Origin: Octopus sinensis
Taxonomy: Eukaryota
NCBI RefSeq assembly: GCF_006345805.1
Contig: NW_021826038.1
Span: forward strand, 1 to 13,993
Length of the DNA: 13,993 bases
Reading direction: 5' to 3'
The position numbers and the translations under genes are program-made. A model generated the notes under the pieces. It searched no databases. It was not told the origin of the DNA and saw only the letters and a program-made list of their open reading frames with translations. Below are positions 713 through 10,352 of this stretch, piece by piece. Numbering within the stretch: position 1 is the stretch's first letter; every line of letters starts with the position of its first letter.

Positions 713-1023
713 TTATACAGACAAGAAAGTAATATTTCGAACGCAGTATAGCCGTGGAAACAGTGGAAAGATTGGGTGTTTTACCTGTAAAAGGCGGAAA
801 AAGTCAGCAGACAACCACGGAACTCGAACCGGTAGCACTCCGATAGTGACTGAGTACTCTACCATTAAGCAAGACTGCCATCTGACAACGATCTCCCTAA
901 AATTAAACGCTAAATATCAAAGTTTTTTTTTAATGCAACAGCATATTGTAAATAAATTTTGTCTTTGTTTTTGGAAGCGTTGAATGTGTTTCGTATTATA
1001 CAGAGAAGAAAGTAATATTTCGA
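711..1023. repeat. 30-bp direct repeats (711-740, 994-1023) bracketing the tRNA-like unit
   Basis: TATTATACAGA[C/G]AAGAAAGTAATATTTCGA, 29/30 identical, 283-bp offset. Confidence 0.9.
809..879 (-). pseudogene. tRNA-like sequence (tRNA pseudogene or SINE head) followed by T5
   Basis: GGCAGTCTTGCTTAATGGTAGAGTACTCAGTCACTATCGGAGTGCTACCGGTTCGAGTTCCGTGGTTGTCT (71 nt). Acceptor stem pairs with G-U wobbles, D loop AATGGT, T loop TTCGAGT. Anticodon and T stems each have a mismatch. TTTTT at 802-798. Confidence 0.7.
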
Positions 1024-3359: not shown

Positions 3360-4260
3360 GAGATGGATGTTACAGTTGCTAAAATGAATGTAAGGTCACG
3401 AGAGAGCTGTTATTGTATCTGGAATATAGTTATGGGCGCAAGATTGATGTTACTGTCTGTACAATGTAGTTATGCTAACAAGATGGATGTGCTTGTGTCT
3501 ACAGTGTAGTTAGGATCACGTGACAGGGTCTATAACTTATACGATTTAACTATGAACGTAGATGAAGTTATAGTCTCTACAATGCACTTATGAACATGAA
3601 GCATTTATTAGTCTATACAAAGTAGTTATGGTCACGGAAGATGTTATAGTCTGTACGATATAGTTAGGATCACAAGACGGCGAGCTGGCAGAAACGTTAG
3701 CGCGCCGGGCGAAATGCGCAGCCGTATTTCGTCTGAGTTCAAATTCCGCCGTGGTTGACTTTGCCTTTCATCCTTTCGGAGTCGATTAAAAAAGTACCAG
3801 TTACGCACTGGGGTCGATATAATCGACTTAATCCGTCTCTCTGTCCTTGTTTGTCTCCTCTGTGTTTAGCCCCTTGTGGGTAGTAAAGAAATAGGTATTT
3901 CGTTTGCCTTTATGTTCTGAGTTCAAATTCCGTTGTGGTCGACTTTGCTTTTCATTCTTTCGGGGCTCGATAAAATAAGTACCAGTTGAGTCCTGGGGTC
4001 GATCTAATCGACTGGCCCCCTCCTTAAAAATGTCGGGCCTTGTGCCTAGAGCAGAAAAAAATATAAATAGGACCACGAAAGACGTTACAGTTTATACAAG
4101 CTAGTTATGATCACGGAGGGTACTATAGACTGCACAGTGTAGTTACAATCATGAGATGGGTGTTATAATTTGCACCCTTCTTATGACTATAAAACAGTGT
4201 ATTTATGATCAAGAGCTGGTTGTTATAATCTGTACAACACAATTGCAATTAGTACATAAA
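3360..4260. repeat. Old degenerate 38-40-bp minisatellite interrupted by a SINE B
   Basis: TAGTTA-like anchors at 3427, 3467, 3507, 3547, 3585, 3623, 3661, resuming at about 4102 and 4140. Approximate consensus TAGTTATGATCACGAGATGGATGTTATAGTCTGTACAATG. Confidence 0.75.
3676..4061 (+). mobile_element. SINE family B, two internal units
   Basis: Head GACGGCGAGCTGGCAGAAACGTTAGC; B-box-like GAGTTCAAATTCC twice; body GACTTTGCCTTTCATCCTTTCGG twice; tail GGCCTTGTGCCTAGAGCAGAAAAAAA. Confidence 0.9.
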
Positions 4261-5808: not shown

Positions 5809-6069
5809 TGGAGGCACATGGCATAGTGGTTAGAGCAGCGGACTCGCGGTCGAGGGATCGCGGGTATAAATCTCTCAGACAGGGCGATGTGTGTGTTTAT
5901 GAGCGAAACACCTAAACTCCACGCGGCTCCGGCAGAAGGTAATGGCGAACTTCTGCTGACTCGCCACAACTTTCTCTCACTCTTTCCTCTTGCATTTTGC
6001 AGCTTTCCTGCGATGGGCCGGCGTCCCGTCCAAGTGGGGAACCTATACGCCAAGGAAACCGAGAAACCG
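5809..6069 (+). mobile_element. SINE family A variant with a different 3' module, probably 3'-truncated
   Basis: Head TGGAGGCACATGGCATAGTGGTTAGAGCAGCGGACTCGCGGTCG; matches 647-467(-) up to ACAACTTTCTCTCACTCTT, then diverges. Confidence 0.88.
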
Positions 6070-6500: not shown

Positions 6501-6963
6501 CCTATTGAAATATTGTTATACCTGTTCAAAGAGTTTGATCTTGTTTTTGTTTTGTGTGTGTGTGCGTTTTTTTCTATTTTGGTGGGAGGGAGGTTCTCTT
6601 TCTCGCATTTCAAACATTTCTCTCTCCTTCCATTCCTTCGCCATTTTACTATCGTAGCTGTTATCGTTAAACCCTGCATCGTTCTTTATCTGCATTCTTT
6701 TAATCACACCGCAATAGATAATGTCTGTTATCTCGATATCATACCGTTGTATAATTAGCTGTTTTAGCTCATTGTATCTTTTACGTTATTCTCTGTTATC
6801 TTTTTCATCACACTGCTACACGTTGTTCTTATGGCTGCAGTCTGTTATCTCTACATCGATAAATAACTGTTATCAATGTTTCTTTTAGCTCTGTTGTTTG
6901 TTTGTATCCATAGTTTTATCATTGCTACAACAGTTGTCCGTTATTATTTTGTCTTTGCGTTAA

Positions 6964-7544
6964 GGCGGCGAGCTGGCAGAAACGTTAGCACGCCGGGCGA
7001 AATGCTTAGCGGTATTTCGTCTACAGCTACGTTCTGAGTTCAAATTTCGCTGAGGTCGACATTGCCTTTCATCCTTTCGTGGTCGATTAATTAAGTACCA
7101 GTTACGCACTGGGGTCGATGTAATCGACTTAATACCTTTGTCTGTCCTTGTTTGTCCCCTCTATGTTTAGCCCCTTGTGGATAATAAAGAAATAGGTATT
7201 TCGTCTGCCGTTACGTTCTGAGTTCAAATCCCGCTGAGGTCGACTTTGCCTTTCATTCTTTCGGGATCGATTAAATAAGTACCAGTTACGCACTGGTGTC
7301 GATATAATCGACTTAATCCGTTTGTCTGTCCTTGTTTGTCCCCTCTGTGTGTAACTCTTTGTGGGCAGTAAAGAAATAGGTATTTCGTCTGTCTTTACGT
7401 TCTGAGTTCAAATTCCTCCGAGATCGCCTTTACCGTTCATCCTTTTGGGGTCGATAAATTAAGTACCAGTTGCGTACTGGGGTCGATCTAATTGACTGGC
7501 CCTCTTCCCCAATATTTCGGGCGTTGTACCTAGAGTAGAAAAAA
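6964..7544 (+). mobile_element. SINE family B, three internal units (184-bp period)
   Basis: One head at 6964; GGTATTTCGTCT at 7011, 7195 and 7379; one tail TTGTACCTAGAGTAGAAAAAA. Confidence 0.93.
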
Positions 7545-8066: not shown

Positions 8067-8091
8067 TATTAGACTTAATAGGAATTAATTG

Positions 8092-8353
8092 GAGACATTG
8101 GTCCTCTGAAGAAAGTCTTCCCAATGCACTCTGCATATTAACAGAACGTGCCTAAGACAAATGGAGACATTTAAGTATCTCGGGGCCGTATTGACGAGTT
8201 ATGGGAGACAACAGAAGGCTAAATTGGATGCTGGGATTGCAGGAAATGGTACAAGAATGCGTCAACTACAGCATTCGATTCTCAGAAGAGAAGTTGGCAA
8301 AAGAGCCAAACTTGCAATCTTCAGTTCTGTTTTTCGTGCCTATCCTTACCTAT
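8092..8353 (+). mobile_element. Degenerate RTE-clade (Rex3/Expander-like) LINE RT C-terminal fragment, left part
   Basis: ETLVL*RKSSQCTLHINRTCLRQMETFKYLGAVLTSYGRQQKAKLDAGIAGNGTRMRQLQHSILRREVGKRAKLAIFSSVF, then +1 shift to VPILTY. Matches the recalled RTE pattern FKYLG..ELD.RI..KREL..KAKL.I..S.FVP.LTYG. Confidence 0.88.
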
Positions 8354-9419
8354 TAATGACCTGTAGGGACACCGTATTTCGTTATGCAGCCATATGCTAC
8401 AAAGTATATTAATGCGCTTATGTAATAGCACTGTTAACATGGGAGAACATGGTAGAATAACATGGGAGAACATGGTAGAATAACATGGTAGAACATCGTA
8501 GAATAACATAGTAGAACATCGTAGAATAACATGGTAGAACATCGTAGAATAACATGGTAGAACATGGTAGAATAACATGGGAGAACATGGTAGAATATCA
8601 TGGTAGAACATGGTAGAATAACATGGTAGAACGTGGTAGAATAACATGGTAGAACATGGTAGAATAACATGGGAGAATATCATGGTAGAACATGGTAGAA
8701 TAACATGGTAGAACATGGTAGAATAACATAGTTGAACGTGGTAGAATAACATGGGAGAACAGGGTAGAATAACATAGTAGAACGTGGTAGAATAACATGG
8801 GAGACCTGGTAGAATAACATGGGAGAACATGGGAGAATAACATGGGAGAACATGGTAGAATAACATGGGAAAACATGGTAGAATAACATGGTAGAACATG
8901 GTAGAATAACATGGGAGAACATGGTAGAATAACATGGGAGAACGTGGTAGAATAATATGGGATAACGTAGTAGAATAACATGGTAGAACATGGTAGAATA
9001 ACATAGTAGAACGAGGTAGAATAACATGGGAGACCATGGTAGAATAACATAGTAGAACATGGTAGAATAACATAGTAGAACGTGGTAGAATAACATGAGA
9101 GACCACGGTAGAATAACATAGTAGAACATGGTAGAATAACATGGGAGAACATGGTAGAATAACATAGTAGAACGTGGTAGAATAACATGGGAGAACATGG
9201 TAGAATAACATAGTAGAACGTGGTAGAATAACATGGGAGACCGTGATAGAATAACATGGGAGAACATGGGAGAATAACATGGGAGAACATGGTAGAATAA
9301 CATGGGAGAACATGATAGAATAACATGGTAGGACACAGCATTGACTTATAAAAGCGTTTAGCAAAATCAGTGATGATTATAATTTCCTAGAAAATCCTCG
9401 GAGATAATCTTGACAAGTG
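8354..9419. mobile_element. 1,066-bp insertion of unknown class flanked by a 12-bp TSD
   Basis: ATCCTTACCTAT at 8342-8353 and 9420-9431; removing the insert and one copy restores PILTYGHEGW. Confidence 0.85.
8438..9331. repeat. 23-bp minisatellite (10+13-bp subunits), 38 full units plus partials
   Basis: CATG(G/A)(T/G)AGAA + C(A/G)TGGTAGAATAA; one lone 13-mer at 8668-8680 and one 22-bp unit at 8796-8817. Confidence 0.97.
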
Positions 9420-9637
9420 ATCCTTACCTATGGTCATGAAGGTTGGGTAACAACCGAAAGAGTACGACTGCGAGTGCAAGCGGCCGAAATCAGGTCTCTC
9501 CGAGAATCTCTGGAGTAATATTACTCAACAGGGTACGATTCCTGAAGATCAGGAATTCTGTCCAGATCGAACCCCTACTTCACCGCATTGAGAGGTTGTA
9601 GTTCCGGTATTATTGACATGTGATTAGAATGTGACAG
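9420..9637 (+). mobile_element. Degenerate RTE-clade LINE RT C-terminal fragment, right part
   Basis: ILTYGHEGWVTTERVRLRVQAAEIRSLR, then -1 shift to RISGVILLNRVRFLKIRNSVQIEPLLHRIERL*FRYY*HVIRM. Matches the recalled RTE pattern LTYGHE.W..TER.R.R.QAAEM.FLR..IEPLLLRIERSQLRW.GH..RM. Confidence 0.92.
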
Positions 9638-10039: not shown

Positions 10040-10072
<33 letters not shown>

Positions 10073-10073
<1 letters not shown>

Positions 10074-10352
10074 ACTTATAAACAAGGGCAAAAGAAAATT
10101 AATTTCTATGCCAATATGCTGATAACAGACTTTTAAATCGTCAATTTCCACATATTATATACCCGCTACAGAATTACGTTGTGCTGAAATCGAGGAAAGC
10201 TAGCCAACAGCATTTTTTTTAAATGTTCGTTATTTCATCAAAAAAGTGGCTGCATATTAAAATACCTTTAAGGTTAAAATTATAAACAACTTATAAAAAG
10301 GGCAAAAGAAAATTAATTTCTATGCCATATGCTGATAACAGACTTTTAAATC
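10073..10352. repeat. 67/65-bp direct repeats separated by 148 bp
   Basis: 10073-10139 and 10288-10352 differ only by two 1-bp indels. Confidence 0.92.

Follow-up and report, generated by a model that had tools for sequence, protein, structure and literature searches.

LINEs of the RTE clade with tandem-repeat 3'UTRs or tails, among which a lepidopteran RTE is reportedly also counted, are among the described elements closest to the locus analysed here. SVA, LAVA and PVA, the composite VNTR retroposons of hominoids, are LINE-mediated, make duplications of 4–20 bp and contain an array of variable length. In bivalves and Drosophila, arrays are carried by MITE-like or Helentron-derived elements, which have terminal inverted repeats (TIRs) or Helitron termini and make no long duplications. 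The octopus element RTE-2_OV has a 3'UTR of ~600 nt which is mostly tandem repeat from the end of the ORF (PMC9115989), and in Rex3 of fish, which belongs to the RTE clade, the stop codon comes 3 nt ahead of the tail repeats (PMC6274825). Given this anatomy, a 5'-truncated copy should therefore retain a few final codons with their stop, followed by a long array and then the 3' end, within a 10–12 bp duplication. Target-site duplications of the RTE clade measure 7–15 bp, mostly 10–12 bp (PMC6007223, Nishiyama and Ohshima), and RTE-related insertions begin roughly a turn of the helix downstream of a stretch of T, which lies near P-10; in most animal RTE LINEs P1 is A, and one horse SINE combines A at P1 with T at P-1 (PMC6007223).

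The window analysed here is a stretch of 13,993 nt of Octopus sinensis DNA, and the features of the locus are given in Table 1. An exact 12-mer, ATCCTTACCTAT, borders a span of 1,066 bp on both sides, this span being non-coding and built around a 23-bp tandem array. An earlier reading of the DNA from its letters (the sequence-only reading) had proposed the two exact repeats; both were located, with no further occurrence on either strand of the whole window, and the identity of the two copies ends precisely at each border. The repeat-rich window also contains a few other unexplained exact 12-bp direct repeat pairs no more than 3 kb apart, hence the ATCCTTACCTAT repeat alone is weak evidence of an insertion.

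Table 1 Positions of the insert, its target-site duplication and the interrupted LINE in the window
Feature	Position	Strand	Description
Left part of decayed LINE fragment	8068..8341	+	RT C-terminal region, ...FKYLG...KAKLAIFSSVF; stops and frameshift
TTTTT run	8330..8334	+	P-12 to P-8 from the first base of the duplication; RTE-type target signature
Left duplication copy ATCCTTACCTAT	8342..8353	.	LINE codons I-L-T-Y
5' unique segment of insert	8354..8432	+	~79 bp; stop codons in all three + frames
Minisatellite	8433..9335	+	~39 units of 23 bp, degenerate edge units (TRF, unit register)
3' unique segment of insert	9336..9419	+	~84 bp (84–88), ends ...GGAGATAATCTTGACAAGTG
Right duplication copy ATCCTTACCTAT	9420..9431	.	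Sequence identity to left copy
Right part of decayed LINE fragment	9432..9631	+	GHEGWVTTERVRLRVQAAEI...IEPLLHRIERL*FRYY*HVIRM

The decisive evidence comes from the flanks. Translated with their frameshifts and stops, ...FKYLG...KAKLAIFSSVF on the left and VPILTYGHEGWVTTERVRLRVQAAEI...IEPLLHRIERL*FRYY*HVIRM on the right give C-terminal sequence of a LINE reverse transcriptase. Excising 8354–9431, so that 8353 is joined to 9432, regenerates SVFVPILTYGHEGWV, and translation over the rejoined junction runs ...KAKLAIFSSVF/VPILTYGHEGWVTTERV... Two related LINE proteins and a related copy of LINE DNA have the same SVFVPILTYGHEGWV without a break and the 12-mer only once. The proteins were found with a stitched 146-aa translation of both LINE flanks as the query and are P0003 (a Pycnogonum litorale "uncharacterised protein", 57% identity, E 1.9e-41) and P0004 (an ENA ORF, E 5e-19); in their alignment, SVFVPILTYGHE (S-V-F-V-P-I-L-T-Y-G-H-E), followed by W, V and TER, is invariant and unbroken. 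The DNA copy, on ENA contig L122, reads TTCAGTTTTT-GTTCCTATCCTCACCTATGGTCATGAG (also written TTCAGTTTTT-GTTCCTATCCTCACCTATGGTCATGAGAGTTGGGTAA) straight across the junction and contains the 12-mer once. The continuity of the LINE after excision, as proposed by the sequence-only reading, is thus borne out in all three relatives.

Since an invariant LINE motif reappears on excision, in protein as well as in DNA, the 1,066-bp block is a true insertion. Of the two copies of the 12-mer, one is ancestral and the other came with the insertion, hence the ATCCTTACCTAT pair is its 12-bp target-site duplication, and the predicted empty-site sequence of the locus is TTCGTGCCTATCCTTACCTATGGTCATGAA. The alternative, that there was no insertion and a chance 12-bp repeat stands beside an array grown in place, or that the assembly is at fault, can point to the other 12-bp pairs of the window. 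However, the repeat is placed exactly where its excision regenerates the invariant motif in protein and DNA, and ~160 bp that are neither array nor LINE would be left to explain. We give this alternative a negligible chance and consider it effectively refuted by the protein and DNA alignments.

The interrupted LINE is a dead internal fragment (~8068–9631) with stops and frameshifts, and homology to its relatives ends past ~9631, after HVIRM. Just left of the duplication, at ~8335, the window has an extra C (TTTTTCGTGCC versus TTTTT-GTTCC in L122), which shifts the frame of the LINE a few bases before the insertion, hence the host frame is not intact. The earlier proposal of a reading frame split by the insert is therefore right in that a LINE is interrupted and wrong in that its frame is broken by stops and the extra C. 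The fragment gave no Pfam match and its relatives do not bear informative names. Its C-terminal motifs are common to several LINE clades, and the RTE label given to it by the sequence-only reading is putative.

Read on the + strand, the insertion site is CAGTTCTGTTTTTCGTGCCT followed by ATCCTTACCTAT, with T at P-1 (8341), A at P1 (8342) and a 12-bp duplication. Together with the T run upstream (Table 1), this corresponds to the published RTE-type signature (PMC6007223), and the length of the duplication, which had been taken as typical of target-primed retrotransposition, does fit that process. Of all window positions, 0.075% show the full signature and 0.87% a T5 run in the same interval; in the opposite orientation there is no T run and P-1 is C. 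On the other side, the T run is ancestral to the host LINE and simply belongs to its coding sequence, for S-V-F-V. The signature was established from plants and vertebrates, not from cephalopods, and was matched post hoc at one site, hence it lends moderate support to an RTE-type endonuclease and to a + orientation of the insert. A LINE-type, probably RTE-type, target-primed insertion mechanism is well supported.

In the mechanism that we infer, with an RNA intermediate, an oriented insert, a LINE origin and other copies in existence, an RTE-type LINE endonuclease would nick the bottom strand ~10 nt downstream of the T5 run. A non-coding RNA made up of a short unique 5' piece, the 23-bp minisatellite and an 84-bp unique 3' end would then be reverse-transcribed from the nick, and a second nick 12 bp away, followed by fill-in, would produce the ATCCTTACCTAT duplication. 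The insertion would have taken place in + orientation into an already inactive LINE fragment, and array length may shift by replication slippage or unequal exchange. No function is inferable for the array.

The insert starts with TAATGACC... and its 3' terminus is ...CAAGTG. The sequence-only reading had divided it into 84 bp of unique sequence, an array of 894 bp and 88 bp of unique sequence. The order of unique, array and unique sequence holds, with a left unique segment of ~79 bp, as the 84 bp had included the first bases of the array. TRF reports the array with period 23 at 8435–9335; in register it has ~39 units, 36 of them exactly 23 bp long. Its consensus, AATAACATGGTAGAACATGGTAG, is AAT plus two copies of AACATGGTAG, and the units differ from it by 6.9% on average, mainly at four transition-prone columns. 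A 46-bp higher-order periodicity is weak (lag-2 identity 20.85 versus lag-1 identity 20.51 of 23). Both unique ends (~8354–8432 and ~9336–9419) are single-copy within the window. The last + strand stops, at 8410–8412 and 8420–8422, lie 11–21 bp upstream of the array.

The absence of TIRs, a poly(A) tail, a tRNA head and coding capacity, claimed from the letters alone, was upheld by alignment, ARAGORN, Rfam and ORF search, which were all negative. No terminal or subterminal inverted repeats were found between the insert ends (the left end against the reverse complement of the right scores 12, the shuffle mean being 14); inverted repeats had been suspected by eye and were rejected on this score. 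Neither end of the insert has a poly(A) tail or terminal microsatellite. ARAGORN found no tRNA gene in the insert, and across 8300–9470 no Rfam family reached its gathering score or E<=10, in a scan which covered hammerhead ribozymes and, as possible heads, tRNA, 5S, 7SL and snRNA. By ARAGORN and Rfam, the insert thus contains no Pol III promoter head of a SINE (tRNA, 5S or 7SL). A structured RNA or ribozyme of the Penelope or retrozyme type was also considered, and was rejected with no Rfam match and no fold signal; the insert ends fold no better than shuffled sequences on either strand (z -0.9 to +1.2).

No credible coding capacity was detected in the insert, where the long ORFs are only low-complexity read-throughs of the array on the minus strand. 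One of these, of 347 aa (8321–9364, minus strand), matched only the proteins P0001 and P0002, which were rejected as homologues: the arrays in their source DNA differ, (AACATGGTAT)x38 in L123 and TTTTACCATG(TACGAC) units in L001, and both have unrelated flanks. The L123 array occupies 247–629 of a TARA Oceans scaffold and its repeat is 9/10 identical to the 10-bp half-unit of the window array; this likeness, which the search itself had selected for, is probably due to convergence on a simple motif. For peptides of the unique 5' segment, no protein relatives were found in a collection which also does not contain the window's own ORFs.

These termini bear on a DNA-mediated origin of the insert, for which MITEs, Mutator-like elements, array-carrying Helitrons/Helentrons and solo LTRs come into question. 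Array-carrying MITE-like elements and Helentron derivatives do occur in molluscs, and moving the boundaries by 1 nt would give the insert a TC start, between A and T. The array carriers of bivalves and Drosophila share with the insert a central tandem array between unique ends, but the insert has a 12-bp duplication and neither TIRs nor Helitron termini. Against a Helitron in particular, the 3' end ...AAGTG has no CTRR, a weak 3' hairpin (9370–9380 / 9404–9414) is not better than in shuffled sequence, and the duplication of 11–12 bp would be left unexplained; against an LTR, there are no TG...CA ends and LTR duplications measure 4–6 bp. Cut-and-paste elements require TIRs, and to our knowledge neither LTR elements nor any described superfamily of eukaryotic DNA transposons makes duplications as long as 12 bp. 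We regard a DNA-mediated origin as very improbable.

The reading we favour is that 8354–9419 is one copy of a LINE-dependent retroposon, likely the 3' end of a 5'-truncated LINE or a non-autonomous derivative of one (probability roughly 0.55). The sequence-only reading had proposed an unclassified non-autonomous element, than which the 3' end of a truncated LINE is no less likely. In the latter case the source LINE would supply its last codons and stop, followed by a repeat-rich 3'UTR, and the insert, with + strand stops shortly ahead of the array, would fit the predicted anatomy. The insert shares with 5'-truncated RTE LINEs that have a tandem-repeat 3'UTR or tail (RTE-2_OV, PMC9115989; Rex3, PMC6274825) the 10–12 bp mode of duplication, the T run near P-10, the A at P1 and the lack of poly(A); as in the insert, stops lie shortly ahead of a long array and short copies are non-coding. 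It differs from them in having a 23-bp minisatellite rather than a microsatellite, in the 84–88 unique bp past the array and in lacking an RTE-2_OV primer match, and the LINE origin of its 5' piece is putative.

The comparison with RTE-2_OV was made through its primers alone: none of six, including LineR7, which ends 6 nt before the end of the ORF (PMC9115989), matched the window at up to four mismatches, hence the insert is not RTE-2_OV. Two further points count against a truncated LINE, firstly the 84–88 unique bp beyond the array, where known RTE repeats form the very 3' end, and secondly the 23-bp unit, which is not a microsatellite, together with the lack of poly(A) or a terminal microsatellite. 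A non-autonomous derivative or a composite, SVA-like family fits the anatomy equally well. The signature, the length of the duplication and the lack of poly(A) are also those of RTE-tailed SINEs (Au-like, Sauria, AfroSINE and Bov-tA; PMC6007223), however their Pol III head derives from a tRNA, and they share their 3' end with an RTE and add a terminal microsatellite; the insert has no such head or microsatellite, and nothing similar to its 3' end was found in the window. The window also contains two abundant SINE families (e.g. 6961–7544 and 2520–2866), which we take to resemble octopus SINEs. Five copies of window SINEs match the O. vulgaris transcript comp3721 (PMC9115989 supplement) at 76–83% over ~100 nt, hence an octopod or cephalopod source with active RTE LINEs is plausible.

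Less likely, in our judgement, is a dedicated and previously undescribed non-autonomous family, more than just a truncated LINE and SVA-like in having a VNTR between a unique 5' and a unique 3' end, which would be mobilised by a LINE in trans. The anatomy and 12-bp duplication speak for it exactly as they do for the retroposon copy that we favour, the array is flanked by unique sequence on both sides, unlike RTE tails, and there is no RTE-2_OV primer match and no Rfam or protein relative. Like the insert, SVA, LAVA and PVA are non-autonomous, do not encode protein and have a VNTR enclosed by unique modules. SVA, however, ends in poly(A) and depends on L1, whereas the insert has no poly(A), an RTE-like signature and no homology to SVA, its family status being putative. 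Against a dedicated family stand the lack of a second copy, of a promoter-bearing head and of poly(A), and the failure to find matches reflects collections which contain neither this genome nor a Repbase/Dfam library.

It is somewhat more doubtful still that the insert represents the first observed copy of an undescribed cephalopod family of composite VNTR retroposons, an RTE-driven analogue of SVA which disperses a 23-bp minisatellite. If such a family exists, LINE machinery would disperse minisatellites in a very repeat-rich invertebrate genome; spread around the genome, the 23-bp minisatellite would seed variable arrays. The copies would be length-polymorphic markers, and invertebrates would have a VNTR-bearing retroposon driven by a LINE other than L1. 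As a single copy in a dead LINE, the insert is an ordinary nested transposable element insertion with no evident gene effect. It departs in nothing from known kinds of element and is new at most as a family.

We searched for further copies with three probes. The array probe, as an exact pattern, gave zero matches in metagenome, genome and viral contigs, the left-end probe zero in genome and viral contigs and the right-end probe zero in viral contigs, all of these being collections evidently without this genome. As a control, a 23-mer from the core of a window SINE, GCCTTTCATCCTTTCGGGGTCGA (7063–7085), matched at least 120 JGI metagenome contigs, which share merely ~35–57 bp with the window, hence the zero matches for the insert carry no weight. 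The spread of this 23-mer suggests that the core domain of the SINE is deeply conserved and occurs in the host DNA of metagenome samples unrelated to each other. The array motif and SINE strings had no relevant match in the literature, and the array and end strings had none in the part of the O. vulgaris transcriptome that was available.

These results also bear on whether the insert was a one-off, either a LINE retro-copy of an unrelated minisatellite transcript or filler DNA at a staggered break, with no mobile family behind it. Repetitiveness is the defining property of a transposable element, and the single known copy would count against a retroposon; a one-off accords with ends that are single-copy in everything searched and with the absence of hallmark termini. 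However, missing further copies are uninformative in these collections, and LINEs with stringent 3'-end recognition, RTE included, rarely copy unrelated RNAs. We consider a one-off event improbable.

Several other repeats were observed in the window. A 19-bp minisatellite, AGGCGTGGCTTATAGGCGC, at 1955–2519 has ~30 copies and a higher order of 133 bp, or seven units, at 96% identity. It abuts the body of a SINE copy (2520–2866) and has the look of that SINE's 5' head amplified in tandem, making it a second array attached to a retroposon in the window. Copies of the second SINE family, at 7011–7497 and 3732–4013, contain an internal 184-bp tandem duplication (2.6 units, 86% identity). As the two loci are separate, the di- or trimeric form probably characterises the family and is not a local event. 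In a stretch rich in AT microsatellites, a 74-bp direct repeat (10066–10139 and 10281–10352, 214 bp apart and 95% identical) represents either a duplication in place or the two ends of something. Finally, a dispersed repeat of ~220 bp is present in two inverted copies (427–647 and 5809–6022, 78% identity), and ARAGORN detected a tRNA-Ser-like structure near the first of these (809–879, minus strand), possibly a SINE head.
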